The notes under the pieces are model-generated. The model had not been told where the DNA came from and made no database searches. It was given only the letters and a program-made list of their open reading frames with translations. From the NCBI GenBank assembly GCA_964187785.1, contig OZ076410.1, forward strand, positions 8,866,001-8,930,000: DNA of 64,000 nucleotides, given 5' to 3'. This DNA is from Amphiscolops sp. MND2022 (Eukaryota). This document shows positions 3,085-62,452 of this stretch, piece by piece; the stretch's first letter is position 1; every line of letters starts with the position of its first letter. The position numbers and the translations under genes were made by a program.

Positions 3085-3900
3085 AGGGGAGAAACTAACT
3101 GGACGAACGATACCTTGGGAGCAAGCGACGGCATGGATGCCAAAGTTGATGTTTATAACGTTGTAGTTCTCAGGGGGTTGTGGTTTCCACCATCCAAACA
3201 AATTCTCTGGTTTTCACTTGTCTGCCAGACTGTGTAAACCACTTTGCGGGACGATTCAACATCGGTATATACTCTTTCAGTCAATTGTTCTGGAGGACGC
3301 GAGAATATGCTTGAGCTCTAGCGTATCGTTTGCAGAGGTGCGGTCGGAGTTCAATTGGGACTGTAGAGATGAGCCAGCTGTTCCAACCTCGAAGTAGATG
3401 CGCGCCAAGGCATCCCATTTGCTGCATCTGCAGGAGCTAACGGGCGAGCGATTAGACTCTGCTCTACGAGACACAAAACAGTTGGCAAAAGATCATCAGC
3501 GAAGCGTCGGCTGCCGAGTATTACATGCGAGAAATTGCTCAAAACATCTCACTGGCCTTCGATTTGTTACTTTTCTTTACCATAAAGTCTGTGCTCGCTT
3601 GCTGATTCCAATGGAGAACATGCTGGTGTAGTCCTTACAGTTGCAATGAATTTAGCTTTAATGTCCGACCAGCACAGGGATATCAGCTTATCACTTTCCA
3701 TGACGCAATTGTTGATGTCAACTAATATCTCAAATTCAAATTGAGACGAATAGTCAAGCATATGAAGCTCCTCTGTGGAGAGTTTAACAGAGACATAAAA
3801 AGGACCACTGTACTTTAATTCAGTGTTCGTGAATGGTCGCGATGCAAAGGTAAGATGTTCTCTTGTCAAGTTTGCGAAAATGGGTCATGATTTCCGCATT
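3085..3900 (-). pseudogene. Decayed BEL/Pao integrase and C-terminal fragment
   Basis: Minus-strand peptides REHLTFASRPFTNTELKYSGPFYVSVKLSTEE, LPTVLCLVEQSLIARPL and LKEYIPMLNRPAKWFTQSGRQVKTREFVWMVE align by eye to the pol of the 49833-59184 element ([81 protein letters not shown]). Many stops and frameshifts. Confidence 0.85.
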
Positions 3901-7257: not shown

Positions 7258-9030
7258 ATTTTTGGGCTAGTTTTGGCTATGTTTCTCACATCCCAGTCAT
7301 ACGATTCTGATGCCATTGCGCACGCAGGAGCACCTTTGGGTGTAGAATGACTGTGAAAAAATTTGTGGAAATCATATCGACTGTTTTTGCGAAATTTGAA
7401 ATTTTCATTGAATGATGGGGAGAAAAAAATGATTGCATAACCCGGGTTTCCCGACCAGGCCGATCATAATCTGACCATATCATGGCACCATAAAATCATA
7501 CAAATTTCCTTACTATGATCGTGCCATGATCAGCCTGGAATCACAGATTGTCCAGAGTATGGACAGAGTATGGACAGCCTGAAACCATAAAAGTTCCAGA
7601 GTATGGACAACCTGAAATCATAAAAACCTAAAAGTTCAATTATAATCAGATAAATGTCGGACATGGCAACCACTTGTGCACAAAGTGCACAGAAATTTGT
7701 TGCCGAGGTCCTTATGCTGTATTTTTAGGGAGGCGCTCAGCTCGTAAGATACATAGTATCGCACTCGACAAGACCCACGACAAGAACGTGGCCTCCTTCG
7801 GGTCTCACAAAAAGTAAAGCACAATAAGCTCCAGGGGTTTGGTACTGCAGTGAAATCTTAAATCGAATTTAGAGGATTTTACCAGTATCATGGTAGTTGA
7901 TGCAATTGAATGACTCTAAAACCTGTTTTATCATGGCCGAAAAACTCTTTCAAAATCCCAGGTCATAAAGTCAAAAATTGACAACGACAGAATTGAAAAA
8001 TGAAAATGTTATTTTACACTGCAGTGAAATTTTTTATCAAACTTGGTGAAATTAACCGGTATGAAGGTAGTTGACGCAATTGAATGACTCTAAAACGTGT
8101 TTTCTTATCATAATTTTCTCATGAAACTAAATTAGGTGGGATAAGGCAGGGAAACCCGGGTAGTCGAAAAATTTTTTCCGATTCCTAAAAATTATCTCAG
8201 CGATCCAACTGCAAATACCACCCATTTTTGACCTATAGAGCTTGACTGGCTAATCGGTTTCTCAGTTAATCGGATAAAAACTATTTACAGGTTAAAGAGT
8301 CTTTAGTTGATTAATCGGAAACTCACGGATTAATCAGCTAATGGGATTAATTGCATTAATCACATTTTTCAAGTAACCGTGTGCGACGATAAGCTGCGAC
8401 TGCATTTCATATATTGCCTCATGTGGTGTTTCTCACAAGTCCGAAAATTAATTTTAACTACCACGAGTGCGAAAATTATTCTTGCACAAACAAAAAAATT
8501 CATATAAGAAGCCAAGCTAAATTGTTAGACAAAACAAACAATACCCAGCGTCCAAAATTTCAGCCTGATTTACTATATGAATGTGCATTTTGATAGAGAT
8601 TAACTTTCGGAAAGGCAGTCATTTTACCAAATATTTAGATAAAATCGATTTACATATTCGTTCTTTTGACGCGCAGAACAGTTAATCTTAATTGAAGGCC
8701 TGGATGAAGTTGCAACATGACAGTAAAATACAAATAAAACTGCTCAACAATCTTTCGGAGTCGTGAGAATTAAAATTTATTTTCAGACTCGTTGATAGCA
8801 ACCGCTCACGAGGCACTTCAATGTTGTCACTACTGCAAACAATTTCGTCGTCAACTTGAATGAAATTTTTTCTCAACTTAAATGTCCAAACTTTGTTAGA
8901 ATTTTCTGATGATGTTTTTGGTTAATTGTTTATTTTGGTCGTTTTGTTTCGGATAACCAGTTACGACTATTGTATTCTGCGGGTTCCCCTGCCATAAAGA
9001 AACAGGTTGATCATACTCTGTCATGATAAA

Positions 9031-12967: not shown

Positions 12968-14016
12968 GTTTTTCTCCAATTTTGTTCGGTCTTTTCCGCT
13001 AAATTTCACATTATTTGTTGAGCTTTAGATATGGCACCGATTTAGGCGGTTCCCGGCTTGTTTTAATCTAAGACCGGACTGTTGAGTGCTCACTTGTTGA
13101 GATCTGTTAGAGTGTGTATATCCAATGCGTCAAAAAGGAAAGGAAGCGACTGCAGTAAAAATTTAACGTCTTCAAAGCCGGAGTTGACTTCCTTAATTTA
13201 AAGGTGTGAGTCTGTAAATTGAGCAGAATTACACTGAAGTTTCAGAACTGATCCTACCCCAATGATCATAATTTCAATTTCTCCAGCAAATCATTTTTGT
13301 TTCCTAATAGAACTTGCGCGCAGTACAAACAGTACCATCGCTTCGTTTTCAATTTTTGGCTCTCGGACTTGAATTGGTCTAATTAAAACAAGTCGGTGCT
13401 TTACTTAAGGCTCAAAAAGCGCAATTTTTCTAAAATATGCTGAGGACTGTTTCTGTGAAAAACTCACAAAAAGGTGTCGAAACATCCAAAGAGCGCTTTT
13501 CGTGCTCGGAAAAGGCTTCAAAACTTCGGATATAGCGTGCTGGACCACATGGCAGCGCTTCTCATGAATCTCGGCTTTCTCATCAGTAAAACGCCACTTA
13601 CTTCGGATATAACGTCAAAAATTCGGATAGTATTGAAAAAGTCTCACAGTGGCAAAAAACATCAAAAGGTAGACCTTTACTCTCGTCCGGTTTTGTATGT
13701 TACATTGAAACGGAAACAAGACGGGACCGGTCCAAGTCGGCGCCATATGTTCGCAACTTTCGAAATATGACTCATAACTTCTAAAGTATGATTCAAAATA
13801 TCAAAACGTATTGTGACTTGTTTTATGTCTTGTATTCCATTGACAAATGCATGATATTATCTTCATTATTCTGCAATCTCAACACATGAATGTCTCAAAT
13901 AAATGAATCTCTTTTTGTAACTATGATTTTTCGCCTGAACAAGCAGGATGGTCCGCTGAAATGAAGAAAACAAGAGTCCGTGATTATTATAACTGAGCAC
14001 CGGCGAGACAATTTTT

Positions 14017-14029: not shown

Positions 14030-14371
14030 TCCCCGGACATCTAAAGACTACAGTCCCAAGATTTTTACCCGTCTTCAAAAACCTCTTAGTTCCAATAAGA
14101 ACCTATTGACATAGTGAATGAGGGGATTCTGAAATTCGAATTTACGATATTTTAGATTTGAACAGAAGTGAGATTTTACAACTTTTTACGATAGTTTATT
14201 CCATAGGTGGATATTTTTGCCGAGTTAATTATAAAACTGAATTGCGGAATTTTTTGTGAAACTGGTTCAAGTAAAGTTGGCATTGCATACTTGATCAAAT
14301 ATTCAATACCCTTGTCCAAATGACCATTTTGAGAGGTTTCTGAATGTCTGCACCAAGACAGTCACGTTATC

Positions 14372-15106
14372 ATGTCTACAGAACTTCATCCACGAAAACC
14401 CTTTTGATTGCCGACTCACAGGCAAGGAATTTGGAAGCAGGCAATTTAAATATACTTTCTCTCTCTGCCTTTTGCTTGTGTCCGGCACGTCTACAATTTT
14501 ATTCCCCCCAAATATATTTTTGACATCATCATTCTTTTTGATGGGGGAAACGATTTATATTTTTTCAAAAACCCAACTACGACACCTGCCCTTCAAGTGT
14601 CGCACGAGATTACAGATCTTGCAAATCTCTTGTGCGATCGTGCCAAAGTAGTTTACGTTCTTGGCATCCCTGAATGAAACGAAAATAAAGTACGTTCGAA
14701 GCAAGTAAACGATTTCTTGCAATCAGTAGGAGAGCGCAAGACCAAAGACCAGCACCTCGTTACGTGGAGGTATCGAACTGTAGCCCGATATATCACTGGG
14801 GCCCGTTGTTTTCATCCCCACCACGCCACACACCTCAACGAAAACGGTCTCAATAACCTTAGAAATCTTTTTGAAGAAAAAATCCTATACAAAACCTACA
14901 AAAAGGAGCTGAACAAGCGTGGTAATGACAAATTCGTTGATTGTAAAAGAGATGAGTGCCAGTGTCCATGCAGTGACTGGTGCAAATATACCCCACAGCC
15001 TTTAAATGTTAGAATTTTCAACTTTTGCTTTCACTTAAAGGTTACCTTGAGGTTCCGCTTAGTGAATTTAAAGTTGAAATTTTGCTTTTTTTGTGTGTCT
15101 GAGTAG
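14372..15106 (+). pseudogene. SGNH/GDSL-hydrolase-like accessory ORF of element 1 (frameshifted, one TGA)
   Basis: Block I TLLIADSQARNL (Ser codon 14416). After a frameshift near 14470, block III DIIILFDGGNDL, then VVYVLGIPE*; TGA at 14675 is probably from CGA. Block V HHATHLNENGL lies in the 14717 ORF. Confidence 0.75.
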
Positions 15107-15321: not shown

Positions 15322-16713
15322 ATGATGACGGATCCCATTCATTCATCCAATCCTTTACGAGCTGATGAAAAACGACTTTCAAGGGTTATGGGTGCGCTCA
15401 AGGGTGCCTTCACAAAGCTCGAAAAGAAAGTGGATGACTTCTTAACTACGGTGATTGCAACGCCAAATCAACTGGTTGAAGCCGAAGCACTTCTAAAGAC
15501 GCTTCAAGACAAGATTCAAGTCATCCATTGGTATGACGCTGAGATAGAACTACTTCTTGATGATGATGATCAACTGTCTCAAGACACGGAGCTTTCGACA
15601 CAGTTCCATCACAACGCAAGTGTGGCTGTTGCACGTTTGTCGGCCCTGACTGACACATATAAGAGACAATCAGAAGCCACGGTGAACTCTCCACGTACAT
15701 CTACAAACGATGGGAGCCAGAATTCAAGCAAACTGAAACTCCCGAAACTTCAACTTCCATCATTTACGGGTTCTTATATGGACTGGATGAGCTTTGCCGA
15801 CCTTTTCAAAGCATCAGTCGACTCCAACAACCAACTATCAAACTCTGAGAAGTTGAACTATTTAATGGTTTGTGTCAAAGGAGAAGCAGCCAAGCTGATT
15901 AGCTCAGTTACGATCACTGATTTTAACTACGAAATCGCTTGGGAACTCCTGCACGAACGCTATGAAAACAAAAGGAGCATTGTTCAAGCCCATTTACAAG
16001 CAATTTGGGTTCAATGTTCTCTGAAGTCTGAATCCTCAACCGGTCTGAGAAAACTACTTGAAACAGCAAACGAGAATCGCAGAGCCTTGACGGAACTGGG
16101 ACAACCAGTGGAGCATTGGGACGCAATTGTCGTTCATTCTCTGTCTGAGAAGATGGATCCCGAGTCACGCAAGCAGTGGCAGCTGGACCATCCCGGAACA
16201 GACCTCCTCACATGGAAACAGCTTTGAAAGTTCCTCGATACTCGAAGCCGTGCACTCGAGATTGGTGGTTCCAAGCCATCAGGTCAAGTAAACACAACTC
16301 AAAACCCCCAACGGCCTGATAAGCGAATCCAATCATATTCGGTATCCAGTCCATCGTGCGAAAATTGTAGTGAGGATCACAAGTTGAATTCTTGTCCTCA
16401 GTTCAAAGCCATGTCAGTTGCCAATCGACATCAATTCGTCAAACGAAAAAGACTCTGTTTCAACTGTCTCCATCCTGATCACTCTTCCAAAGATTGCCAG
16501 TCAAAGTTCTCTTGCCGCGAATGTAAGATGAAGCACCACACACTGCTCCATCGAACTCGAAAACCTTCCAATCCACCACAAGTCGGTGACAACGGGAGAA
16601 ACACTTTTCAAGCAAGCGGTAGTTCGGCGTCTCAGAAAGACTCCAACTCTAAGTTCACAACAGGGCATTTGAACACTGATAGTCAGACGATACAGTACTT
16701 CTCTCCACTGTAG
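15322..16713 (+). pseudogene. gag: Element 1 gag (DUF1759-like region and zinc knuckles)
   Basis: KLPKLQLPSFTGSYMDWMSF motif; in-frame TGA at 16225. Cys/His knuckles CENCSEDHKLNSC, CFNCLHPDHSSKDC and CRECKMKHHTLLH. Confidence 0.88.
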
Positions 16714-20568: not shown

Positions 20569-20989
20569 AAAACTTTAATCAACAACAAACTTGTAGTTTT
20601 GATTTTCCTTTGTTTCAAATGTTTCGCTTAATTTCCTATAGGAAATCAAGGCGGGCGGTATGTTCGCAACTTTCAAAATAAGACTCATAACTTTTAAAGT
20701 ATGATTCAAAATATCAGAACGTATTGTGACTTGTTTTATGTCTTAAATTCCATTGACAAATGCGTGATATTATCTTCATTATTCTGCAATTTCAACACAT
20801 GAATGACTCAAATGAATGAATCTCTTTTTGTAACTATGATTTTTCGCCTGAACAAGCAGGATGGTCCGCTGAAATGAAGAAACTAAGAGTCCGTGATTAT
20901 TATAACTGAGCATCGGCGAGACCACCATATCTAAGGCTCAAAAGTAGCAAAAGGACTTCAAAATGTCAAAGTATTGGTGAATTGGGAAC

Positions 20990-47870: not shown

Positions 47871-49876
47871 AAATAGTAAATTAATATAATCAGAAAAGAT
47901 ATTTCCAAAACAGGTTCAGAACAGATATAATTTTGATGAGGTTTGTAACAATTGAGTCAATTTTGGGGAGTAAGAGCTATATATACTGCCGTCAGCATGA
48001 CACTCACTTTTTTGACATGATTCGATAAATTAGTCAACATTCCCTGTTTCACATGTACAGAAGGTTACACATACATCAAAGCAAATTCTTTACAAGCGCC
48101 TGATTGGGACACGAGTCCCATGTCATCCTGACAAACGCATGAGAGTTCTTTTGAAATGTGACATTCTAAATATTTCCTTAGTCGGCACAAAGCAATAATA
48201 AATGTCCACAACGCATCAATCAAAGGATCAGATTGCACTCAGAGTGATAGGACTGCAAACATTCATTTGCAAGCACGTGCCTACGCATGCAGGCTGAATA
48301 TTGGTTCGAAATGTTTCGCTCAGCACCATAAAATTTATTTTACATGCTAGGAAACCTTTACTTCTTGTTGGCCAGAAAGGGCCGTCGGACTTAAATCCAG
48401 GCCTGACATTTCTGTCAGAGAGGTTCTGATAGTAGGTACATTGTATATTTAGCATCAATAGGCAACAGATCATTATTATTCTTGCCAAATACCAATATGC
48501 ATGAAAGAAAACATTAAGTACTTTCTGATTAAAAGCACTATTTTGTTGGTCAAGTAAGACATTCCTCATAAATAAAACAAGTATTGGCCGGCATAGGCCG
48601 ATTGACTGGTATCACTAGAGTAGCAGCTGTGTTTGGTCAATTGGCCGTAACCAGCATAATGAAAGATACTGCATAGCAACAAAGTATATGTATACTGCAT
48701 CCTGATTGGCTACTTTCTGAACTGTAAGCAACGCTGCCGAGAACACGTTTGCGCTCTTGAAAACGTTTCTTTTCTGTTGATTAATTGAATACAATTTATC
48801 AGAGCTCTTTTCGATACAACTTACACACATTGCAACTTCAATATATTTGACTTCTTGACTTGATAACCACAAATCGTAAAATATTAACAGACTAATCTAA
48901 ATACTTGAATGCAACAAGAATATATAAAGGTAGCAACATCTAAAATGCAAAGTGTCCCCATTAAAGTAAAAAGTTCTAGTTTGTTCGATTGCTGGGTAAG
49001 GTTTACCTTAATAGATTGGCAATGTTCCGGGTTCGATTTGCTGTCCAATTGTTGTCGTTGTAATTCTCCTTCTGTCACAGGCGGCAGCCTGCGACAACCC
49101 TTAAAAATAAAAACTTCTCCCAGGAATGTTTTTTTCTTGAACATATGAAAAATCGATGTTTCAATTGATTTTTTATTGTTGTTGCTCTATGTCTCAAAAT
49201 TGTCGAAAAAAAACGCAATATTTTCAGAGGTGTAGAGAAAGTGTTCAACTGAGTTTTTTCTGAAGGTCAGTTTATGTTTGCAAATTTCAAGCTCATCAAA
49301 GTGTGGTCAAATTAACTTTTATTTGTTTTTGTTGGGACTATTTTTGATACAGAAGGCGTGTTTCCAATTACTTTTTATCATTGATCTTTTGGTGTGAGAG
49401 CCTCTGGTTGCTCCCATGAGGTGTCATTTTCTCAAGGCTTCTTTGTCTCAAGATAACAAACAGACCGCAACAACGTCGGTATGCCCCTTGTTTTTGGTCT
49501 ACGCATTTTGGAAAAAAGTGCCCTACTGTAACAGTGATCACTATTTGGTTTCGTTGGATAATAATGTATCTGTATGGTCCACTCCAAAGACTTTTCGCTA
49601 AAGATCTAACAGATTATATCCTTGTGAAATTCTGTAGAAAAGTTTTTAGTCGGCGTTTTATGAAATGAAACGCGACTATTCTTGTGACTTTTCGTCGTGT
49701 TTTTTTGTTTTTTTTTTCAATCCCGTCGAAGTGACCATTTCGTGCCAAATGCCTAAATCCGAAAATTCTACAACAAAAATTCTGTAAATTGGCAAATTAG
49801 TCGGAAGGGTCTCGTCAATCGTATTTTGACATTGTTGTGTACACAATATGATTGGATTAAAACAAACTAATCTTTG

Positions 49877-49950
49877 GGCGCTATGGCGAAATAGGTTAGT
49901 GCGTTCGGTTCCTATTCCAAAGGTCCGGAGTTCGATTCCCGGAATCTGCG
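49877..49950 (+). promoter_or_regulatory. tRNA-like Pol III module inside the 5' LTR (also 58830-58903 in the 3' LTR)
   Basis: GGCGCTATGGCGAAATAGGTTAGTGCGTTCGGTTCCTATTCCAAAGGTCCGGAGTTCGATTCCCGG has an A-box-like and a B-box-like motif at tRNA spacing. Stems are imperfect. A T5 run follows about 45 nt downstream. Confidence 0.7.
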
Positions 49951-51162
49951 GAACCTTTGGTAAAAAATACTAAAATACCGTTTTCGACTAAAATACTTTT
50001 TGAAATAATATATACGAAACTTTGACCTTGCTATCTCGAAACTTTAATTAATGTTTGATAATATTTGTAAACAACCTTTGTGCCTTTGTCAGTTTCGTTA
50101 ATTTATACAGCTTTATCATTGTTCTATTGTGTTGCGTTCGAAAAAACAGAAACGTTCGAAATATACCATTCATTTCTTAAAGTCTTTTGCAAAACGATCT
50201 GTAGAATTGCTCCGAGACTACAGCTATTTTATGGTGGCCATAGAGAGGCATATACATTACACAGATTTTTATCGAGGCTACGGTTGAAGTGGACAAATCA
50301 GAGACTGGACAAGCTTTAACTCCTGAACTCGTGACGTCTGACCCCAAGACATGTGCGACCCTTGATGTGACCCAAGCGAAGAATCAACTGCCCGAACAAC
50401 GTCTTCCACCCCTCCTATCGCCCGCCCCAGACGTCCGCTGGGTGAAATCATCCACAGAACGGGTTCAAATTAGTGGGCATGTTCCACCTAAGGGAGACGA
50501 ATCCTCCCCGCCGAAGTAAACGAGATTAAACCAGATATTATACGCCCAAAAGCAGACCGAATCGAATGAACAACTATCATTACTGATTCAGCCGAAGGTT
50601 CGACGAAATCTTAGCAACTTTCTCGACACCACTAGAACTTCCCCCCACTGATGAGCTACCCCCATACAACCCACAGAAGATCCCCTGGTTGTTAGTAACC
50701 AAAAAACTTGAAACACATCGCGATTCTTCAGGATTTAAAATTCCTGAAAAGTTCTTGATCAAAATTTTAAACCCAGAGGCTTTATTATTTTAATTATTGT
50801 GCTAATCTTCGAGATAGCAAAGTTTGTCAAATTCGGGACACTTTTGTGTTATGTAAAACTTCCAGTTTCTTATGAAATTTGGAAAGGGTGATTGATGAAA
50901 AAACACATAGTAACACTTTCCTAAAAGGCACAAAAAAATTGACACCCTTCTTTCAAACAGAACCCAAAAAAGGGTTCAATTCGTAATTATCAACTGAAAC
51001 TCGGCATAAAATTTAGAAAACTGAGCGCTAATTGCATTTTGCTTCTTGTAAAAAAACTTTGTCCCGAATTTTCCAGGTAATCTTGTTCCAATTTGAAAAA
51101 TTGTTGGATCCGCCTTTTGATAATCCGTGTAGCCAAAAGAAAAAATCACAAAAAAATCAGTT

Positions 51163-51939
51163 TTGCGCGAAGTGTTGCAAAAAAAACGCATGGTTTTCAT
51201 ATTGGCTGCTAGTTCTTTGCACCATGCAATAGAAACGTTAACTCCCGATGAAAAAGAACGTTATGAAAGCAAAATTGTCTCTATCCCGGGCCTAAGTCTC
51301 AATCCGAACACGAAAAATCCCAAGAAGATTGTTCAAAATTTACTTTCGAAAGATCTGAAAGATAAAAAAGACATTGTGATTTGGCATGATGTTTTGAACA
51401 ATAGTATTTCGAAACATGATAGCAACAATTTACGTGCGTTATCAGTGTTGGATCTAATTAAAACATTGAAAAATCTTCAAGACAAGCTTTGTGCTCTGGT
51501 GTATTGCCAACGTTACCGCACCCCGTACATTTTCGAAGAATTGAAAGTTTTGCAATATGATCATGACATCAAAGTGTTCAGTATCGTCAAAGATTTTATA
51601 TCCGTGAAAAAACGAAAGGATCCCGAGATTCTTAAACAATTCAAGGCGTTGCATCAGAGCCCAGAGCTTGAGCTGAAAAATTTGGATTTCGTTCTTCGTA
51701 AAGAGAATCAACTCTCTGCAATAACCGATAAAAACCGACCCAAACGGCCAAGTAAGCGTGCCCGGAACGCTGCAAAGAGAGCCGCTGCCTTCTTTTACTC
51801 TCAGTTGACAACACCCCCCCCCCGCTGCTTCCAGCTGTCGAGACAGTGTCCGAACTTCACTGATCGGTTGAAGTTTCTTCAGCTCTTCCTCCTTCTTTCA
51901 GAGTTGTGTCCAGTCTTGACTGACTGGTTGATACTCTGA
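51163..51939 (+). CDS. Accessory ORF of element 2, derived SGNH-hydrolase-like fold with basic C-terminal segment
   Basis: Open frame, likely ATG at 51190: VFILAASSL (block I), KIVSIPG (II), DIVIWHDVLNN (III), ALVYCQR, FKALHQSPE (V), then RPKRPSKRARNAAKR. The SGNH assignment is by motif order only. Confidence 0.6.
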   Translation: MREVLQKKRMVFILAASSLHHAIETLTPDEKERYESKIVSIPGLSLNPNTKNPKKIVQNLLSKDLKDKKDIVIWHDVLNNSISKHDSNNLRALSVLDLIKTLKNLQDKLCALVYCQRYRTPYIFEELKVLQYDHDIKVFSIVKDFISVKKRKDPEILKQFKALHQSPELELKNLDFVLRKENQLSAITDKNRPKRPSKRARNAAKRAAAFFYSQLTTPPPRCFQLSRQCPNFTDRLKFLQLFLLLSELCPVLTDWLIL

Positions 51940-52214
51940 AAGATCGTTTCGTCCCTCACCAGCACCACCGTCAACTGAGACCGCGTTGAGTCGACGCGAC
52001 TTTGAGTTTATCGTGTTCCGTCCTCGTAGTCTGTGACTACTTTTAACTTAAAACAAAAAAAATTGCCAGTTTCTTTGTAGAAGCACTGTACAAACACAGT
52101 GTTGTCACCGATAAACACCGTTCTTTCTTCTACCGAACTTTTTCTTGAACTGTGTCCAAACTTAATTGTTTGGTTGACGTCTGAAAAAGTACAAACGCCC
52201 ACCGATCCTCAAAT

Positions 52215-54560
52215 TTGGCTACGGTCATGTCTGACCCCGTTCACGAAAAGGTGCAAAAGTTATATGACAGTCGCGCGAAAGCCGAAGCCGACCTGAACAG
52301 ATATCAAAAAGACGTGACAGAAGCAGTAAACAATGCCGATAGACGAGTACGCGTCGAACGGTTGGTCACTTCTTGCGAAGAGGCTATGACAAAAGCTTTC
52401 GCTAAGAACGAACAGCTACTCGAGCTTGCCAAAAAAACCAACGACCCGGCAACTGTCACTGCAGACCTAGAAAAATGGTTGAACGTCACGAGCATACAAA
52501 ATGACGGAATTTTGAGAAGCGCAAGGGAATATATCGATCAATGTCCCAAAACAGATAATTCTTCGCAAACTTCAGTCAAAGCTGCCACCGTAAAGACTAA
52601 GTCTAGCAAAGTTTCAAGCAGCAAAGCGTCGAAAACTTCAAGTCAGCGCCAACGAGACTTGCTTATTGCCAAACACAAGCGAGAAGAAGTAGAAAGACAA
52701 AACGAAGCTACGTAGCTAAGCAAAATCAAGAGCTCGAGCTCGAACAACTGCAAGAAGAGAACCGCAAACGACTTGCAGAGGCGCATCTAGCTGAACTTGA
52801 ACTTCAAGAAGACCCCTCTGAAGCTAACGAGGATGCTCACGAAACTCTTTCGCGTTTGAGCAGAACAACGAACGCTAGCGAAACACGCCGAGTTAGCGAC
52901 TGGGTTAACAACTCACCAATCGTTGCCACGACTCAACACGAGACGGCAAAAGCGGTGTCTGCAAGTCTAGCGACTTCGGTAACAAACACCACTGTTTCGA
53001 TTCCATCTCAGCAACCTCCGGTTAATGTCTCCCAGCCGACTTTCGCACCAGGTGATCCCAACGAAACAAACGTGGCAGTACAACTACCAACAACTACCGT
53101 TCCATCAATGAGTTTAAATCACACTCCTGCGATACAAACTCAGACTCCTCCATTGACAGCGCAAAACTTGGGGAATATCGGACCTTCAACATCAGCTGTC
53201 ATAGTACAACATCAAGTTCAACCGACAACCATCCCGGCCCAAACTGGAAGCTTTAATGCACAAGTATTAACGCCACAAACGACATCACGTATGCCCACAT
53301 TCACAATGCCGGTGAACCACATCCCCCCCCAACTTGTCCGCTTGGACCTTCCCGAACCCGACCGTTACCACCGCACCGATTGTAACAACAATTCCATCCC
53401 CGACACAGCCGACGGCACCTACATTCATACCGGTTCCTCACCTGCCAACCTGTGCCGCTCCGACAGTACCCGTTACCGCTGGTGGAACTGTATATTATGT
53501 ACCACCAGCAACCGTTACAACGCCAATTGTGTACAGTACAGTAGCACAACCGACAACTTCTCTCAGTCCTACAGCCGCTACATTTGTACCAGCCGGAACG
53601 TCAACGACTATGCAACCAAGTGCAACCGGATTCACGATACAAGATCTTGCATTGTTGTTAGCTTCAACGAAGAAAGACCATCTGCCAGAGTGGAAACTAG
53701 CACAATATAATGGTGACCCGATACAATGGCATGAATGGTTTGGCCAGTTCAAAAGTGCCATAGACTCAGCACCACTCACCGATGACGTCAAGTTAACATA
53801 CCTCAAGACTCTTGTTACAGGTAAAGCAAAAACTGCTATCGCTGAGTTTGCTTACTGCGGAGCAATGTATAGAGACGCCCTAAAGACACTAGAACGGAAG
53901 TTTGGACAGCCACAGGCTGTAGTAACTGCCTATCTGGATAAGTTGGCAAACTTTCCACCCGTGAAGATGCACAACAGTGAGAGCATCATCAGTTACTCAG
54001 CAGTAATTTGTTCTCTAGTCGAGGTCTTCCGATCTCTAAACTACGTCCAAGACCTGTCAAGCGCATCATTGCTTGGACAAGCCGTTCAAAAGCTTCCGCC
54101 AAACATGAAAGAAGCATGGTCACTGCACACAGTGAGGCGAACTTTGGACAGATCGACGCTCATTGATTTCAATGACTGGCTCAAAGACAAAGCCGGAGCG
54201 CATGAGCGCATGAAGTCTCTGCCGAACAAAGCGAAACCTGAAGAAAGTAACAACGTGACTGTAACTAAGACCAAGACTGCTTCCAAGGTTTTCGCAGCGA
54301 CGACTTCTAGTCAACAAAGTGCCAGCGCCAAAGTTAAGAATGGCAAACCGCCCAACACTTGTGCCGCTTGTAAAAAAAACATCCTTCGTGGAGATGTCCA
54401 GCATTCAGAGGAAAAACACCCACAGAAAGAGCAAGAATTGTAGCTGACAATAAGCTTTGCTTTTCATGCTTCAACCAGAACCACACGTTTCGCCAGTGCC
54501 CGCAACCCCGCAAGTGTACAAAAGATGGATGCGGGAGTTCACACAACACTTTCGTGCACG
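52215..54560 (+). pseudogene. gag: Element 2 gag (coiled-coil N-terminus, long P/T-rich linker, DUF1759-like core, zinc knuckles)
   Basis: HLPEWKLAQYNGDPIQWHEWFGQF and KLTYLKTLVTGKAK; knuckles CAACK... and CFSCFNQNH...C. Disrupted near 52713, 53330 (C8 run) and 54370 (A8 run). Confidence 0.88.
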
Positions 54561-57500
54561 GAGCTGACAGGATTTTTGCTAAGAAAGTCACTAGCGTGAA
54601 CAAGGACAAAACTGAAACATCTGGTTGTATTGGAACATCAATGAACAACGAAAAAGCAGACGAGAGCTCAGGCATGCCTTCCGTTGCCGATGTCAAAGGC
54701 CTGTTACAAGTAACGGAAGTTGAACTTCACGGGAACGGCAAAAGCGAAAAAGTCCTAGCACTGTGTGATTCTGCCTGCAGCCATTCCTGGATCTCAACAA
54801 ATCTGGCAACGAAGTTGAACGTTCACGGTACCGCAACCAAGCTTACTGTCCATGGCATAAATTCCAACCAAGTCGTAGACACCCAACTGGTGGAGCTTAA
54901 GTTGACACCCGTTCATTCGGGTGGCTCTTGCTCTTCCTTTGTTGTTAAACCGTACGTCAGGGAAGACCTCAAAATCGGAACTGACACCATCGATGTCGAA
55001 CTTTTGAAAACAAAGTACCCCCATTTGCAACCAATCTCTTTGAAAAAGTACAGCTACGCCGATGTTGAAATGATCCTAGGTCAGGACGTTTTCCACTCGA
55101 TCCGCCCGCTGGAGTATTTTGATTCCGACCGCAAAAATGCTCCAGTTGCCGTTCGTTTACCGTTGGGCTGGGTTTTGAGTGGACCGCTCCCCTCGTCCTC
55201 AGGTCTCTATTCAACTTGTTTTAAAGCTGTTGCTTCTAACAAGGAATTGGACTCCGAACTTGCCGACCAACTCCGAAGCTGGTACTATATCGAATCGTAT
55301 GGAGCGTACAAACAAGTAGATTCACGTTCCGCAGCCGATGCGAGAGCGTTGGAAATACTTGAAGAAACGACTTACCACGATGGTAACCGATACCATGTGG
55401 GAATGTTGTGGACCGAACAAGACAGTAGTTTGCCGAATAACTACTTTTCCGCGCTCGTGTAGCTGAAGTCGTTAGAACGTCGCCTCGACAAAGATCCTGA
55501 ATTGAAACAACTTTATGCCAAAACAATTCACGACGACTTCGACAAAGGTTACATCATCAAAATTGACAAAAGCGACTGTTTCAAATTAGACCAACCCCGC
55601 GAGTGGTACCTGCCACACCATCCTGTAGTGCACCCGCACAAACCTGGCAAAGTTCGCAGAGTATTGAATGGCGCAGCAAGGTTCCAGGGCCAATCTTTGA
55701 ACAACGCCTTGTTAACCGGACCGGACTTGCTACAAAGTTTGATACACATACTGATCCGCTTTCGTCAACACAAGTACGCCGTCTCTGCCGATATCGAAGG
55801 TATGTTTCTTCAAGTTGGAGTCATACCAAAAGATCAACCTTCACTTCGTTTTCTGTGGCGGGGAGACCCAGCTGCAGAAATCGCTGTGTATCAGTACGTC
55901 CGGCACATCTTCGGGTCGAAGGACTCACCAACATATGCGAACTACGCACTGAAACGTACTGGTAGCGATAACCAAGACGCTTTCCCTGAAGCAGCGAAAA
56001 GCGTTCATCGCAATTTTTACATGGACGACTACTTGGAATCAAGCCCTACGGTCGAAGAAGCCAGTAACAAAGCAAAGGACTTGGTGGCACTGCTTGCAAA
56101 AGGTGGCTTTAATCTAACTAAGTTTGTTTCCAACATTAACCACCTTTCAGCCGAACTGCAACAAAGCGGCGAACTAGCACCGACCGATGAGAAGGTGATT
56201 CCGAAACCAGACGAGTCCTCACATGTCTTGGGACTTAAATGGAATCATGCCTGTGACACTCTCGTTGTAAGTCGGGGAACGAGCCCTGCTACGAACAAGA
56301 AACTTACTCAACGAGTGGTACTGAGCGTAGTTTCAGCTGTCTACGATCCCATTGGACTCGTTGCTCCGTTTACCGTCCAAGCAAGACTGTTGTTGAAAGA
56401 CATCTGGAGATTAAGTGGTCAACAGTGGGATGACGATCTGCCAGACGAAGTCGTAACTAAGTTCAACGAATGGAGCAAGGAACTGCCAACTTTGAGCGAA
56501 ATTCAAATCCCACGGAGCTATTTCGAAGCGCGAGTTGAAACCTTGGAGCTTCATATGTTCGGTGACAGCTCTCAAGATGTCTTCAGCGCCGTCGCCTTTC
56601 TACGAGGAAAAGTTGCCACCACGACTGGTTATACAACAGAGTTAGCTTTCGTCTTTGGGAAAGCCAGAGTAGCACCCATGAAAGCCCTTACGATCCCGAA
56701 GCTTGAACTACAAGCCTCGTTGCTTGCTGCACGACTCCGAAAAGAAATTGAAAATGCGCTAACGGTCAGAGTTGCTAACACTTTCATGTGGACGGACAGC
56801 ACGACGGTCCTTCAGTGGCTCCATTCATTAGAGAAGCAACCGGTGTTTGTAACCAACCGCGTTGCCGAAATCTTGGAACTAACAACAGTGGATGAATGGA
56901 ACTATGTTAAATCAAGTGACAACCCCGCTGATGCAGGAACGCGTGGTCTTTCAGCCAACTCACTTCGTGACAGTCCTTGGCTCAAAAGTCCTTCATTCTT
57001 GCGAACACACGACTGGCCGTTCAAACCACCAAAAGAAGTTGAGGTCAAATTGAAAGCGAAAAAGTCGGACACTCCCATTTCGGAACAAGAAACTTCAGAA
57101 TTTTTGACAGCTTTAAGTGCAACCGTGATCGGCATCGCGACAACTTTCGAGTGGCAGAAGTACAGCTCGTACGAGAAACTTCTGCGCGTTGTTGCTTACA
57201 TTTTGCGCCTACTGCCAAAAAACGAAGGTTACCGATCCGACTCTGGTTTAGTAACTGACCCAAATGAAATGCGAAATGCTGAATTGAGACTTTTCTATCT
57301 CATCCAACAAGAGTCATTTCCCGTCGAACTGAAGTGCTTGCTGAAAAAATCCCCCGTCAGCAACTCTTCTAAACTTTCCCAATTCTCCCCTTTCATTGGG
57401 CCTCAAGGCCTACTGCGAGCAACCGGTCGGACCAAACAACTAACAGTTTCCAACTTCGACGCAAAACACCCTATTTTACTGGACAGCCGTCACCCCGCCG

Positions 57501-58627
57501 TACGCTTGTACTTAGAGCAGCTCCATGAAACGCATTGCCATCAGGGTGTCGACTACATGAGGGCGTTGCTGCAGCAACAGTTCGCCATCGTCAAGCTTAG
57601 AACCGCCCTGAGGTCAATTGTCTCCAAATGTGTCACTTGCCGCAAACGTCGAGCGGAAACTCTTGACCCGATAATGTCCGACCTTCCTCGGGAAAGACTG
57701 GCATTTCAAGAGCGTCCATTTACGAACACCGGAATTGACTATTTTGGCCCGTTTTACGTAGCTGTGAAAAGATCAACCGAAAAACGATGGGGATTCCTAT
57801 TCACTTGCTTAACAACCAGAGCTGTCCATTTTGAAGTTGTCCCGTCAATGGACACTAGTAGCTGTGTTATGGGAATAGAAAGATTTGCTGCCCGCCGGGG
57901 CGTCCCATCTGTTTTGTGGTCTGACAACGGAACCAATATCATCGCCAGTGAAAAGGAGTTGCTACAAAACGTGTCAGCGTGGAATCAACAGATTCTGTCT
58001 GAAGCTTTGGTCAAAAAACGGATCCACTGGAAGTTCAATCCTCCCAGTGCTCCCCACCACGGAGGTGTCTGGGAACGAATTGTCAGGAGCTTCAAACACG
58101 TTTTTTACGCAATTCTTGGAAACAGTCGCCTAACTGATGAGATACTAACAACTACCTTCTGTCTGGTAGAGCAGAGTCTCAATTCCCGTCCACTGGTACC
58201 CGTTAGCTCCGACGCTACGGATTTGGATGCCTTGACACCAAACCACTTCCTCTTGGGAACCGCGGGTTCCACAATGCCATCGCACCAAAGAGCCGACGTA
58301 GACCACAGAAAACGCTACGCACGCGCGCAAGCGTACTCAGATGCAATTTGGGACCGTTGGCTCAAAGACTACGTTCCGTCGCTTAACCGCCGTTCGTTGT
58401 GGTCAACCCAACCAGATCGAGATCTCAAGACCGGTGACCTTGTCTGGATTGTGGAGCCTACGAGTCCACGAGGACATTACCCACTTGCACGTGTGGTCAA
58501 GCTGAACTACGGTACCGACGCTGTCGCTCGTTCTGCGGAACTGAAAACCGCAACAGGAAACCTTGTTCGACCCGTTGTCAAACTTGCACCCGTTCTCCCG
58601 TCCCCCGATTCCCCCAATCTTACTTAA
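54554..58627 (+). pseudogene. pol: Element 2 pol (protease, RT, RNase H, integrase) with one in-frame stop
   Basis: ALCDSACS (protease); WYLPHHPV and NFYMDDYL (RT); HMFGDSSQD (RNase H); HETHCH...CVTC, GIDYFGP, WSDNGTN and HHGGVWERIV (integrase). TAG at 55460-55462. Confidence 0.95.
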
Positions 58628-60013
58628 TCTTTAACCTTCTTCGTTTTTGTTTTCTCTTGTAATCATGCCAAAAATGAATAAAATGTAACATGTACATCAA
58701 AAACCCATGTAATCCGTTTTCAAAAAAAGTTTCCGTTTCAATTCAAATGTTTTTTTTGCATTCACATCTTCTTGGGCCCGGAGGATGTTGTGTACACAAT
58801 ATGATTGGATTAGAACAAACTAATCTCAAGGCGCTATGGCGAAATAGGTTAGTGCGTTCGGTTCCTATTCCAAAGGTCCGGAGTTCGATTCCCGGAATCT
58901 GCGGAACCTTTGGTAAAAAATACTAAAATACCGTTTTCGACTAAAATACTTTTTGAAATAATATATACGAAACTTTGACCTTGCTATCTCGAAACTTTAA
59001 TTAATGTTTGATAATATTTGTAAACAACCTTTGTGCCTTTGTCAGTTTCGTTAATTTATACAGCTTTATCATTGTTCTATTGTGTTGCGTTCGAAAAAAC
59101 AGAAACGTTCGAAATATACCATTCATTTCTTAAAGTCTTTTGCAAAACGATCTGTAGAATTGCTCCGAGACTACAGCTATTTTAGACATACTTATTCGAA
59201 TTAGAATAATATTGAGTTATTTTCGGAACTGTGCTACTTTTATTCATAAAAATTTCAATTTTCCAAGAAGGTCGTCCTTGTTTTTTTTCAAAAAAAAATG
59301 GGTAGAAAAAAACTTTCTTAATCCAAAAGGGTATATCGTGAGTTTTTCGGCATTGTGCTATCTTTTCGGGAAGTTTTTCATTCCACGAAGGGGTTATCGT
59401 TTTGGTTTCTTGATGTTCCTGGTGATAAAAAGGTAAAGAAGCATTTTAAAAAGCCAGGTTCGCTCTTTCTCTCGGTGAATCTCTTTTTGCTTTAAAAAAG
59501 GAGTCTCATTGTGCCCGGAGAGCGTCGCTCGGAAATTAGATTAAAAACGACAGTGCCATTGCGTCTCTTTTCTGAGTCAATTTTCAAAACTTACTCAAAA
59601 CTTACTCAAAACAGACTCCAATAGTTATCGCATGAAAACGTTTTTCCTTTGTAATTCTTCAATATATATCAATGATAATTGTTATCGGAAGAAAATTGTT
59701 TGGATAGGGGTTGTCTGAAATTCAAATAGGATTTGATTGTTCACCGCGGTTTATTTATGTACCAATGTAAACATAGGTTTGTTTCAAATACACTGCTACA
59801 AACTGAAATTATTTTAATGTGCCTAAGACGAAACAGTGGTTTCTGGGACTATTGGCAGTTTATCGGGAATTCGGATTGAACGGCGGTTTTCAGTGGAAAA
59901 AATTGAACACTTCAAAAAATTCTACCACTTTGGAAACCAGCGGTGGAAAAGGCGATTGATTTTGTTTCTTATTCAGCGCAATATTCATGATTCATCAGCA
60001 GAAGATATCATTT

Positions 60014-62452
60014 TCATTTATTGTCCTTTTTCGAGTTTTCCAGCTGCATTAATCTTTCCTTCACAATCGGAGGTAAAGAAACTTCCTGTCTTTCGATCTT
60101 TTTTGACGGCTTCATTAACTCCAGGATTTTCTCGACCATTTCTTTGGTTTCTTTCTTCGAAGATGATGATCGTTCCACTCCATTTTCATCAACAAACCGA
60201 ACTTCCTTCTTCATAAGATCTATCATTTGTTGGTTGTTTCCATTTTTCATTTGTTGTAATGCCTCTGATACAATTGGCGGTAATTCCACGTTCATTTTAC
60301 CACCACTTTCTTGTCCTGATTTCATGAGATCCAACAAATTTTTCACTATTTCTTCTGTATTGACGCTAGTTATGTCTTTTTGCTTCTTATTAGAACCATC
60401 GGTAGAAGTAGCTTCATTTTCCACTGAATTACTGTACGCAATGGATTTTTCGTTTGAAGTAGCATTTTCCCGTGGATTTATTTCATCGTTTTGATTATAG
60501 GAGTTTTCAGAGACATATGTTACGGATTTCAAACCCACAGCTTCCTGGTTTTCTAGCTTCGTTTCGTTCTTCGGATCTTCACTAGTTGTTTGTACCAACG
60601 ACTCATGTAGTTGATCAGACAAGTTTACTTGCTCAACAGGAGGGTTTGATGACTCAGCTGATAGTTCATCATCTAGCTCCGAATGATTCTGAGAAAGCAT
60701 TTGGCCAACTTTCTCTCGGCTAGAAGTTTCATCTCTCTCGAGACCTGTCACCCGAATTGCCGCTGGTTCCAGCTCCTGTATTTTTGACTTCGGTTCCAAC
60801 TCGTTTTCAGCAGTGCATTCAGCTGATTTTGATTCCAACTCTAGTGTTTTCGCGTCGTCTTGACCAATACCGTTGTTTTCTGTTTCATCTGTTTCCTTGG
60901 AGATTTCTTTGGAATTTGCCTCGCCATCAAAAACTACATTACCAGTTTCTTTGCCTTCATCCATTTCAGCAGAACTCGTGGAATTTGTTCCATCAAAACT
61001 GCCTATTGGGTTAGAGTCAGTTTGGGCTCTTTTGTCAGCTTCCATGCTAGCAATCAGGGAATCGAGTTCTTCTCGATCGCTATCGCTGTGATAGTCGGAG
61101 CACTCTTCGATTATCATCGTTACTGGAGGCACTACTTCAATTACGTCATCCGGGTCTGAAGCAGTTATGAAATCATTTACATTCGAAGCAATCGTTGCGT
61201 CATTTGGGTCCGAAGCGACAATGATGTCATTTGGGTCCGAAGCAATGGTTACACCATTGGGATCCGAAGTAACAGTTACGTCGTTTGAGTCCGAAGCGAC
61301 AATGATGTTATTTGGGTCCGAAGCGATGTTCACAACATTGGGGTCCGAAGTAACAGTTACGTCGTTTGGGTCCGAAGCGACAATGGTGTCATTTGGGTCC
61401 GGGGCGACAATGATGTCATTAGGGTCCGAAGTAACAGTTATGTCGTTTGGGTCCGAAACGAGAATGATGTCATTTGGATCAGAGGCAATGGTTACGTCAT
61501 TAGAGTCCGAACTGATCATTGGGTCAGTAGGGTCTGACCTTGCGTTATGATTGGCAGGATCAGGTATGCTCATTTGATCTCTGCACAAAGAAGTTTCTGC
61601 TCTTCCTTCGTCGTCTGGCAGCAGTTTAGGATTTTCAGCAGTTTGTGCACTTGCGAATTCTTCAGTTTTTCGTAAAATATTGAAAGCTATCATGAATATA
61701 GCGGGACTGACTATGTCGTATCCTCTTCTGACCAAATACAACCAAAGCTTGGTCTTGCGAGAAACGCTCCAACTCGCCAGCAGAGCGGAAAACGCTGGAG
61801 ACCAAAAGAGAATCCAGCACCCAGTGGAAATAGCTGAAGCCGCCATGAGGATGCGAAAGTGTTGCATGTTGCCCCAGAACCTCATGAATGGGACGTTGAT
61901 AACATAAAATGTCGCGGTAAAAACCGCGGGTATGAGATAAAAAAGGACCCACACGACTTTATCCAAAACTCTGACTTTTGTAACTAGCGAATTTATGCAT
62001 ATACCTTCTCGCGGGTTAGAATAACCCTGTTTAGTACTTACAGCCATGACAATCGTCATTCCTGTGATAAGTAGGAGCGTCAACCCGACAAAAATTTTGT
62101 TGAATTTCGATGACAGCTGAACTTCATTGCCTCTCAGTCTCCTTATATGGTAAATCTTGATTGCGTGGAAAATTGCAACAGCTAATAAGAGGTAGCCTGT
62201 TACGTAAGTTGGAATTTCATTGGTTGTCAACTCTAAGAGGCAACTGTACCATTTTGGGCGGAAAGGTCCCGAATCGGAGATGATGACCAAGTGACAGTAA
62301 TTAATGGTCCCAAAAACACCGCCTAGCAACAGTTGAATTGCAGATAAAGTGGAAATCAGAATAACTGCCGGTGAAAAATCAAAGGCAGGTTCGGCGAAAG
62401 TTCTGAAGAGGAAAGTTCCGTTGAGGATGGCAGAGAAAACTGACAAGGCCAC
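60014..62452 (-). CDS. Terminal exon of a divergent class-A-like 7TM receptor with a long (over 500 aa) acidic tail
   Basis: Acceptor TTTTTCAG at 62453. Seven hydrophobic segments, with ILNG (TM1), WYSC before TM3 and GIC in ECL2 (disulfide pair), FYLIP..FY (TM5), FWSP (TM6) and SPAIF (TM7). The N-terminus must come from an upstream exon that was not identified. Confidence 0.75.
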   Translation of the reverse strand: MALSVFSAILNGTFLFRTFAEPAFDFSPAVILISTLSAIQLLLGGVFGTINYCHLVIISDSGPFRPKWYSCLLELTTNEIPTYVTGYLLLAVAIFHAIKIYHIRRLRGNEVQLSSKFNKIFVGLTLLLITGMTIVMAVSTKQGYSNPREGICINSLVTKVRVLDKVVWVLFYLIPAVFTATFYVINVPFMRFWGNMQHFRILMAASAISTGCWILFWSPAFSALLASWSVSRKTKLWLYLVRRGYDIVSPAIFMIAFNILRKTEEFASAQTAENPKLLPDDEGRAETSLCRDQMSIPDPANHNARSDPTDPMISSDSNDVTIASDPNDIILVSDPNDITVTSDPNDIIVAPDPNDTIVASDPNDVTVTSDPNVVNIASDPNNIIVASDSNDVTVTSDPNGVTIASDPNDIIVASDPNDATIASNVNDFITASDPDDVIEVVPPVTMIIEECSDYHSDSDREELDSLIASMEADKRAQTDSNPIGSFDGTNSTSSAEMDEGKETGNVVFDGEANSKEISKETDETENNGIGQDDAKTLELESKSAECTAENELEPKSKIQELEPAAIRVTGLERDETSSREKVGQMLSQNHSELDDELSAESSNPPVEQVNLSDQLHESLVQTTSEDPKNETKLENQEAVGLKSVTYVSENSYNQNDEINPRENATSNEKSIAYSNSVENEATSTDGSNKKQKDITSVNTEEIVKNLLDLMKSGQESGGKMNVELPPIVSEALQQMKNGNNQQMIDLMKKEVRFVDENGVERSSSSKKETKEMVEKILELMKPSKKIERQEVSLPPIVKERLMQLENSKKDNK
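61136..61513 (-). repeat. Coding 27-bp minisatellite (9-aa unit [AT]SDPND[IV][TI][VI]), about 14 copies
   Basis: SSDSNDVTI ASDPNDIIL VSDPNDITV TSDPNDIIV ... ASDPDDVIE, in frame within the receptor tail. Confidence 0.92.

Follow-up and report, generated by a model that had tools for sequence, protein, structure and literature searches.

Within a 64-kb stretch of contig OZ076410.1 of Amphiscolops sp. MND2022 (the whole of which is referred to here as the window), two long terminal repeat (LTR) retrotransposons of different BEL/Pao lineages are found, element 1 and element 2, and each has a small open reading frame (ORF) between its primer-binding site (PBS) and gag. The ORF of element 2, designated ORF0, is the subject of this report. 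ORF0 is a real, conserved gene, with a fixed position ahead of gag in its element family. It is probably a retroelement accessory gene for a protein of SGNH fold, likely a Ser-His hydrolase with a basic tail, which moves as a module among LTR-retrotransposon superfamilies. A first-pass annotation of the window, made from the sequence alone, had recognised the ORF as SGNH-like and had placed it, together with its counterpart in element 1, in one system common to a clade of BEL/Pao elements.

Conservation of ORF0

The frame is open on the forward strand from 51163 to 51939, and its first ATG is at 51190. Counted from this ATG, all the motifs quoted in the first-pass annotation are present in the order given there, namely VFILAASS (residues 2–9), SIPG (31–34), IVIWHDVLNN (62–71), LVYCQR (103–108) and ALHQSPE (153–159), followed by the basic segment RPKRPSKRARNAAKR (183–197). 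A word-indexed search returned 254 relatives at E<=0.01, with a best E of 1e-114; most are 202–205 amino acids (aa) long and match the first ~200 residues of the query. In a profile search against 1.84 billion cluster representatives, 794 clusters (counted at 50% identity) were obtained at E<=1e-3 and 478 at E<=1e-10, typically of ~200 aa. Because the family ends at 202–205 aa and the window copy continues for another 47 codons, the length of about 250 aa given earlier for the ORF is a peculiarity of this copy; its location upstream of gag and its open frame are as described. Among the matches listed and the 20 clusters looked up, no name beyond ‘hypothetical protein’ was found. A tblastn search of ORF0 against the window detected no second copy of the gene and no match in element 1.

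The position of the gene could be followed in other copies of the element. In five loci from one ENA assembly (L001–L005), ORF0 lies 425–490 nt upstream of gag-pol, and in three of them (L002, L003 and L005) the gag-pol frame downstream is unbroken over 2134–2135 aa. The LTR pairs that enclose ORF0 in L002–L005 are 100% identical, so these copies are very young. The family gene is also found 24 nt upstream of gag at locus L012 and upstream of BEL/Pao gag-pol remains at L013; locus L009 gave no usable context information. Among the BEL/Pao relatives, identity to the window copy drops in ORF0 roughly in step with that in gag-pol (65% vs about 64–73% in L001, about 40% vs 56% in L012), which fits long co-inheritance within the lineage. 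Judged by its substitution pattern, ORF0 is under purifying selection: comparison with the L002 copy, with which it shares 91% of its DNA sequence, gives a ratio of nonsynonymous to synonymous substitution rates (dN/dS) of 0.24, and against L001 the corresponding proportions of differences are 0.21 (pN) and 0.79 (pS, saturated). Conservation among family copies, on which the earlier reading of the ORF depended, is thereby upheld, both in the retention of the gene at a fixed place upstream of gag and in its low dN/dS.

The first-pass annotation had also drawn attention to the fact that ORF0 is open while gag-pol is broken. This is correct as an observation: by comparison with an intact relative of 2135 aa, gag-pol of element 2 is interrupted by three indels that shift the frame and by one in-frame stop, and the 202-codon core of ORF0 in the window has no lesion. 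It carries no weight as an argument, because four lesions in 6.4 kb lead to an expectation of only about 0.4 in 0.6 kb, and because this copy of ORF0 has itself lost the usual end of the family. Some of the single-base indels in gag-pol could be assembly errors.

Two features beyond the usual end of ORF0 may be recorded here. In the window (51796–51939), the usual end is followed by a poly-C stretch that codes for proline. A few family members (P0018, P0064 and P0118) continue into a downstream peptide that they have in common, in a frame other than that of the window run-on; this stretch is possibly no more than non-coding RNA that is conserved upstream of gag.

Predicted fold

An alignment of 64 diverse family members (A2), with a mean column identity of 26%, was used to predict the structure of ORF0 with AlphaFold2. 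The resulting model, in which strands alternate with helices and a helix stands at the C-terminus, has a predicted local distance difference test (pLDDT) value of 96.2 and a predicted template-modelling (pTM) score of 0.88. In a Foldseek search of the PDB, SGNH/GDSL enzymes or design scaffolds made up 42 of the 50 matches listed, the top nine included; only two of these 50 reached E<=0.001, and both are SGNH/GDSL proteins. The matches include the GDSL-like acylhydrolases of Bacteroides (3p94, 4ppy, 4iyj), 7ddy, yeast Iah1 (3mil), sialate O-acetylesterases (6xpg, 7pzg), the alpha subunits of PAF-AH (1vyh, 1wab) and TesA (6lfb), and the Foldseek probability is 0.97–1.00 for the best twenty. SGNH-domain proteins were likewise among the best matches from the viral library BFVD, with a probability of about 1. 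The protein is thus confidently predicted to form an SGNH-type alpha/beta/alpha sandwich, in agreement with the fold that had been proposed from its motifs.

Searches at the level of sequence gave a different picture. With the window protein and the 64 family members, Pfam at E<=0.1 produced no match to Lipase_GDSL, Lipase_GDSL_2 or any other esterase family, and the scattered matches that it did produce, to TPR_ZFYVE26 and KaiA_N, were below threshold. Sequence and profile searches of the PDB (profiles A1 and A2) yielded nothing significant; 4c1b, the esterase of a long interspersed nuclear element (LINE), is present in that database and was matched at E<=10 neither by the single ORF0 protein nor by either profile. 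The Macro domain of ThsA, the best PDB match of the shallow profile, was dismissed as a homologue, its E of 0.077 being insignificant.

Candidate active-site residues and proposed function

The candidate S, G, N and H residues pointed out in the first-pass annotation proved to be near-invariant, being retained in 92–98% of members: Ser8 in 61 of the 64 sequences of A2, Gly34 in 59, Asn71 in 59 and His155 in 63. Further positions kept are A7 (61), W65 (60), H66 (60), D67 (57), H76 (57), Y105 (57), R108 (57) and E161 (58). Ser8 follows strand 1 (residues 3–6), at the start of a helix formed by residues 8–15; in the model, Gly34 comes after strand 2, the WHD..NN block after strand 3, and His155 in the loop ahead of the last long helix, a register that matches blocks I, II, III and V of SGNH proteins. 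The signature residues of Escherichia coli TesA are Ser10, Gly44, Asn73, Asp154 and His157, as is generally known, and the spacing S8-G34-N71-H155 of ORF0 is close to S10-G44-N73-H157 of that enzyme. The basic segment that had been noticed behind the motifs is also conserved, with a median of 42% Lys plus Arg over the 30 residues past position 178 in the 64 members; in the model, its helix spans residues 189–201. At the other end, the model places strand 1 at the very start of the protein, which leaves no space there for a signal peptide; this concerns the suggestion in the first-pass annotation that the protein could help particle-membrane interaction in place of env.

Whether and on what the protein acts as an enzyme, what its tail does and how it is translated are matters of inference, for which we propose the following working model. 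The ORF0 protein would be cytosolic or nuclear, with about 200 residues that form one SGNH-type domain and a short, strongly basic helical tail. It would most likely act as a serine hydrolase (esterase, deacylase or lipase-like), with Ser8 as the putative nucleophile, His155 as the putative base, and Gly34 and Asn71 as candidates for the oxyanion hole; the catalytic acid could be dispensable, or its part could be played by one of the other near-invariant residues (Asp67, His66 or Glu161, for instance). The tail may serve in nuclear import or in nucleic-acid binding. The ORF1p esterase of CR1/L2-type LINEs provides an analogy for its role: the ORF0 protein might act on lipids or on acylated host molecules while particles are being assembled or trafficked or are entering the nucleus. 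ORF0 could be translated from the genomic RNA as the first of two cistrons, gag being reached by reinitiation, or it could have a transcript to itself. A more far-reaching version of this model is put forward only tentatively. In it, ORF0 and its relatives would make up a large, so far unannotated branch of the SGNH fold, confined to retroelements, with a rebuilt catalytic centre (Ser8-His155, and an acid or second base from the block III region, His66/Asp67, or from Glu161), and this branch would be exchanged as a module among BEL/Pao, Ty3/gypsy and Ty1/copia elements. Viewed alongside the unrelated SGNH ORF of element 1 and the esterases of LINE, Penelope-like and Ngaro elements, the hydrolysis of esters in lipids or acylated host molecules would then be a step that retroelements have recruited repeatedly.

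A number of observations have to be set against the interpretation of ORF0 as a translated gene for an SGNH-fold hydrolase. Block I of the family reads G/A-A-S-S, with G-A-S instead of G-D-S, and position 152, three residues before His155, is occupied by K, R, Q, S or A and is never predominantly acidic; the Asp of DxxH is absent throughout the family. Taken from the sequence, these two features could be compatible with a non-catalytic protein. The equivalent of the block III Asn is ambiguous (N71 or H66/D67), because N71 lies within a predicted helix and W65-H66-D67 comes directly after strand 3, and the placement of S8, G34, N71 and H155 in an active site is deduced solely from the order of the motifs and the secondary-structure register of the model. 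The structural match to SGNH proteins is modest, with a template-modelling (TM) score of about 0.5, a root-mean-square deviation of about 5 A and E values from 5e-4 to 3e-2; a shallow alignment of 19 sequences gave an unusable model (pLDDT 52); and the 50 PDB fold matches listed do not include 4c1b, the LINE esterase (PMC3905857). In the Pfam and PDB searches, a sequence-level link from ORF0 to any SGNH family was absent, and no NCBI or UniRef source was found among the matches listed and the 20 clusters looked up. As for translation, eight ATGs stand upstream of ORF0 within the 958 nt of PBS and leader (50232–51189), compared with about 14 expected. The spacer between ORF0 and gag was assessed against dinucleotide shuffles, a lack of ATGs being a possible sign of reinitiation: in three elements its 425–490 nt contain 0–1 ATG, with shuffle fractions of 0.07, 0.29 and 0.05, so that the depletion is suggestive, weakly beyond the shuffles and not clearly beyond chance.

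Some of these observations would also be expected of a pseudo-enzyme of SGNH fold, in which the domain would bind lipids, glycans or proteins or act as a scaffold, and the tail would act in RNA chaperoning, in packaging or in import of the pre-integration complex. The altered block I, the family-wide absence of the DxxH acid, the failure of SGNH profiles to recognise the sequence and the conservation of the basic tail all fit such a protein, and catalytically dead GDSL derivatives have been reported in Athena-L retroelements (PMC5408684). This explanation is nevertheless considered unlikely. Ser8 and His155 are missing from only three members and one member of A2, respectively, despite the low mean column identity of the alignment; the polar cluster of H66, D67, N70, N71, H76, R108 and E161 is also kept, as is typical of an active site and not of a scaffold; and the loss of candidate residues falls on degraded copies, e.g. 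P0129.

Distribution among retrotransposons and relation to element 1

Members of the ORF0 family are associated with three types of LTR retrotransposon. P0267, which is 28% identical to ORF0 and retains all key residues, lies 105 nt upstream of a gag-pol of Ty3/gypsy type, with a CCHC knuckle, protease, reverse transcriptase (RT), RNase H and rve, on a circle-assembled contig of 4.76 kb; the gypsy-type carriers are L006–L008, on Logan contigs SRR228242xx/3xx. The P0255 cluster (34% identical to ORF0) is situated downstream of a pol of Ty1/copia type, in which rve precedes RVT_2, at two loci (L017, 9001–9639, and L018, 8001–8639) that belong to the same assembly as the BEL/Pao copies. Other family members are found on marine metagenome scaffolds. 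The best explanation of this distribution is that the ORF0 family is a module present in three LTR-retrotransposon superfamilies, and not an invention of BEL/Pao elements held in common with element 1.

Repeats accompany the gene at two of these loci. At L017, the ORF stands just ahead of an 89-bp repeat that is also present upstream, and at L006 an 85-bp direct repeat (776–946, 94% identical) reaches from the last part of the SGNH-like ORF into the first part of gag-pol.

Element 1 has LTRs at 13733–14009 and 20647–20922, which are 94% identical, and its gag begins at 15322. Its upstream ORF is broken in the window by at least one frameshift and at least one in-frame stop. The intact relatives P0270 and P0271 are 211 aa long and contain the blocks LLIADSQ, LPGA, GGNDL and D..HL, followed by a Cys-rich end; in the alignment of this family (A3), SGNH blocks I, II, III and V are present, DxxH included, which are all the blocks that could be checked. 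The Pfam match of these relatives to Lipase_GDSL_2 is weak (E about 1e-4, below the curated cut-off), several family members carry a previous annotation as PF13472, and a profile search of the PDB with the family gave only insignificant matches, to block III of GDSL proteins. It had been stated in the first-pass annotation that the Asp of DxxH is missing from both elements. This applies to element 2 and to its whole family; in element 1 the loss is limited to the window copy, because the intact relatives keep the residue. An intact ORF of the element 1 type lies between LTR and gag of a BEL/Pao element at locus L014 (10001–10636), and one member of the family (L015, 10001–10651) is located directly upstream of an apurinic/apyrimidinic endonuclease (APE) and an RT, at the place that ORF1 takes in a LINE. 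This arrangement suggests that LINEs and BEL/Pao elements have exchanged the gene.

The first-pass annotation had named a lack of homology between the two ORFs in profile-profile comparison as evidence against its proposal, and the comparison was negative. The hhalign probability was 0.03–0.3%, with E values of 0.03–0.97, over four modes covering local, global and low-threshold alignment, hence below 1% in each; for a single relative of the element 1 ORF against the ORF0 profile it was 1.7%. In its location between PBS and gag of a BEL/Pao element, in its similar length and in being of SGNH type, the element 1 family resembles ORF0. It differs in its clear SGNH blocks with DxxH, in its weak Lipase_GDSL_2 signal, and in a Cys-rich C-terminus where ORF0 has a basic helix.

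These likenesses could be taken to mean that a single SGNH gene in the ancestor of the BEL/Pao clade gave rise to both types of upstream ORF, that of element 2 having diverged past recognition. Both encode about 200–211 aa on the same strand, between PBS and gag; both are SGNH-like, that of element 1 by sequence and that of element 2 by fold; and both end in an appendage, a Cys-rich one in element 1 and a basic one in element 2, that possibly binds nucleic acid. Such a common origin is nonetheless improbable: no mode of hhalign found a relationship and tblastn was empty, one member of the element 1 family stands as ORF1 in a LINE that has APE and RT, the element 2 family is found in gypsy- and copia-type elements, and gag-pol of the two lineages is only about 32% identical. 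For these reasons, the layout common to both elements fits better with repeated or modular acquisition of SGNH genes than with single inheritance, and different SGNH genes were probably acquired by the two BEL/Pao lineages of the window. Of the clade-level PBS-[SGNH]-gag-pol system envisaged in the first-pass annotation, the shared layout stands, and its common descent is not supported.

Two further explanations concern the fold and the ORF itself. A merely superficial likeness to SGNH proteins, the true fold being some generic sandwich, flavodoxin-like or Rossmann-like, from a different superfamily (e.g. Macro-like or nucleotide-binding), is very unlikely. A TM of only about 0.5, the ThsA Macro domain as best, if insignificant, sequence match of the shallow profile (E 0.077), and a few non-SGNH folds low in the Foldseek lists would accord with it, but the best twenty PDB matches are SGNH/GDSL proteins, or design scaffolds among them, and non-SGNH matches have TM values of only 0.28–0.39; moreover, SGNH-domain proteins are obtained independently from the viral library, and the order, the spacing and the secondary-structure context of the four SGNH signature residues are those expected of an SGNH protein. 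ORF0 might also be thought to be open merely by chance, to have been inserted as nested foreign DNA, or to be a host gene that a single copy picked up. Its GC content (39% vs about 47% in gag-pol) and a leader unalignable with that of the closest relative might hint at this, but it is hardly credible and already refuted: ORF0 recurs at one and the same site across many independent copies whose LTR pairs are identical and whose gag-pol is unbroken, it is under purifying selection, and it has hundreds of divergent family members.

Comparison with known systems

SGNH-type proteins have been described in several groups of retroelements. The ORF1p esterase of CR1, L2 and RTEX LINEs has hydrolytic activity and binds acidic phospholipids (PMC3905857). 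Like ORF0, ORF1p of ZfL2-1 (4c1b) is a retroelement protein of SGNH fold encoded upstream of the polymerase gene, without a signal peptide, and its active-site-like residues are conserved at low overall identity (PMC3905857). In contrast to ORF0, the LINE esterase can be recognised by sequence, has the full S-G-N-H set with the Asp and is attached to a coiled coil (PMC3905857). It also replaces gag in elements that lack one (PMC3905857), whereas element 2 has a gag of its own and, apart from it, the small ORF0, whose product ends in a basic tail. Of the two upstream ORF families, it is that of element 1, not that of element 2, which has a member at the place of ORF1 in a LINE.

A GDSL esterase/lipase is encoded by ORF3 of the Vesta LTR retrotransposons and the Athena Penelope-like elements of bdelloid rotifers (PMC5408684). 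Here too, an additional SGNH-type ORF is carried by LTR retrotransposons and is common to unrelated groups of retroelements; it has no transmembrane or coiled-coil segments, and an auxiliary role has been proposed for it (PMC5408684). ORF3 differs in being located downstream of pol, in rotifer lineages that are Ty3/gypsy-like, and in being detectable by HHpred as a GDSL protein with its invariant residues kept (PMC5408684). ORF0, for its part, lies upstream of gag in BEL/Pao elements (downstream of pol at L017 and L018), belongs to a distinct sequence family, in which the Asp is absent. The Hydro-SGNH ORF of Ngaro-like tyrosine-recombinase retrotransposons is likewise an additional SGNH-hydrolase ORF without proven function (PMC9210276); it follows the tyrosine recombinase in an element of the DIRS order and is detected by standard domain models (PMC9210276).

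Cellular SGNH hydrolases (3p94, 4ppy, 4iyj, 6xpg, 7pzg, 1wab, 1vyh, 6lfb) resemble ORF0 in having a single domain of ~200 residues with the same topology, over ~200 aligned columns, and in a similar order and spacing of S...G...N...H. They differ in having G-D-S and DxxH, and their identity to ORF0 is 8–15%, with a TM of about 0.5. ORF0 has G-A-S, no acid three residues before the His, and additional invariant residues (W65, H66, D67, H76, R108 and E161).

Significance

SGNH esterases were already known from LINE ORF1, Penelope-like and Ngaro elements and the Vesta elements of rotifers, and their role in retrotransposition is still unexplained. In the literature searched, where ‘BEL/Pao’ could not be searched as a phrase, no account of an SGNH ORF in elements of this superfamily was found. 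What is added here is a separate family of nearly 800 clusters, invisible to sequence models, which is placed ahead of gag in BEL/Pao elements and occurs also in elements of gypsy and copia type. In addition, the same 64 kb contain a second BEL/Pao lineage with an SGNH gene that lacks a detectable sequence relation to ORF0 and has a relative in a LINE. The repeated recruitment of one fold by all major classes of retroelements argues that the activity matters to their life cycle. If the tentative version with a rebuilt centre were true, ester hydrolysis would be a general and unexplained requirement of retrotransposition in animals. The ORF0 family offers many natural variants for structural and comparative study, and in genome annotation a common ‘hypothetical’ ORF can be marked as transposon-borne.

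Structure of element 2 and other features of the window

Element 2 is a young BEL/Pao copy, with LTRs that are 99% identical and a 5-bp target duplication, GACAT, on either side of the LTR pair (Table 1). It is assigned to BEL/Pao because its downstream ORFs contain, in the order of the Pfam matches, DUF1759, an Asp protease, RVT_1, the Pao peptidase Peptidase_A17, Integrase_H2C2 and DUF5641. Immediately 3' of the 5' LTR is the PBS-like sequence TGGTGGCC...; the PBS-like TGGTGGCCATAGAGAGGC is identical after the LTR of the relative L002, and the sequence after the LTR of element 1 is different. No similarity was found between the LTRs of element 2 and those of element 1. The earlier description of the two elements as having unrelated LTRs and different PBSs was accordingly confirmed by comparison.

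Table 1. Features of element 2 and the upstream ORF remnant of element 1 (positions in the window).
Feature	Position	Strand	Basis or remark
Remnant of upstream SGNH ORF, element 1	14344..14980	+	Between 5' LTR and gag; broken
5' target-site duplication GACAT, element 2	49828..49832	+	Read from sequence; repeated after 3' LTR
5' LTR, element 2, 399 bp	49833..50231	+	blastn vs 3' LTR: 99.0% identity over 399 bp
PBS-like TGGTGGCCATAGAGAGGC, element 2	50232..50249	+	Directly after 5' LTR
Leader from PBS to ORF0, element 2, long	50250..51189	+	Unalignable with leader of closest relative
ORF0, window copy, 249 codons from first ATG	51190..51939	+	Last 47 codons are run-on
Predicted SGNH-fold domain, residues 1 to about 177	51190..51720	+	AlphaFold2, Foldseek; candidates Ser8, Gly34, Asn71, His155
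Basic C-terminal tail, residues 183–202, RPKRPSKRARNAAKR..., predicted helical	51736..51795	+	Model; family composition
Spacer from family-typical ORF0 end to gag ATG, 428 nt, zero ATG	51799..52226	+	
gag-pol, element 2, broken BEL/Pao	52227..58627	+	Pfam domains; 94.2% identity to L002
3' LTR, element 2	58786..59184	+	blastn vs 5' LTR
3' target-site duplication GACAT, element 2	59185..59189	+	

The leader of element 2 (50232–51189, PBS included) could not be aligned with that of L002 (9203–10000), although the two elements are 90–94% identical from ORF0 to pol, their LTRs are about 70% identical and the PBS is the same; the divergent 5' leader is either a recombination mosaic or the product of very fast evolution. 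Both LTRs of element 2 contain a tRNA-like stretch with the T-loop box GGTTCGATTCC (49880–49955 and ~58833–58908), and this stretch is also present in L002, at about 8910–8985. ARAGORN and Rfam (at the gathering score) made no call for it; it could be a tRNA-derived promoter or a piece inside U3 resembling a short interspersed nuclear element. A further fragment of a BEL/Pao pol, about 36% identical to gag-pol of the element 2 type, lies on the minus strand at 3173–3884. Finally, ~15 copies of a 27-bp tandem repeat, 65–83% alike, occupy 61138–61542, within a minus-strand ORF of 812 aa (60014–62452).

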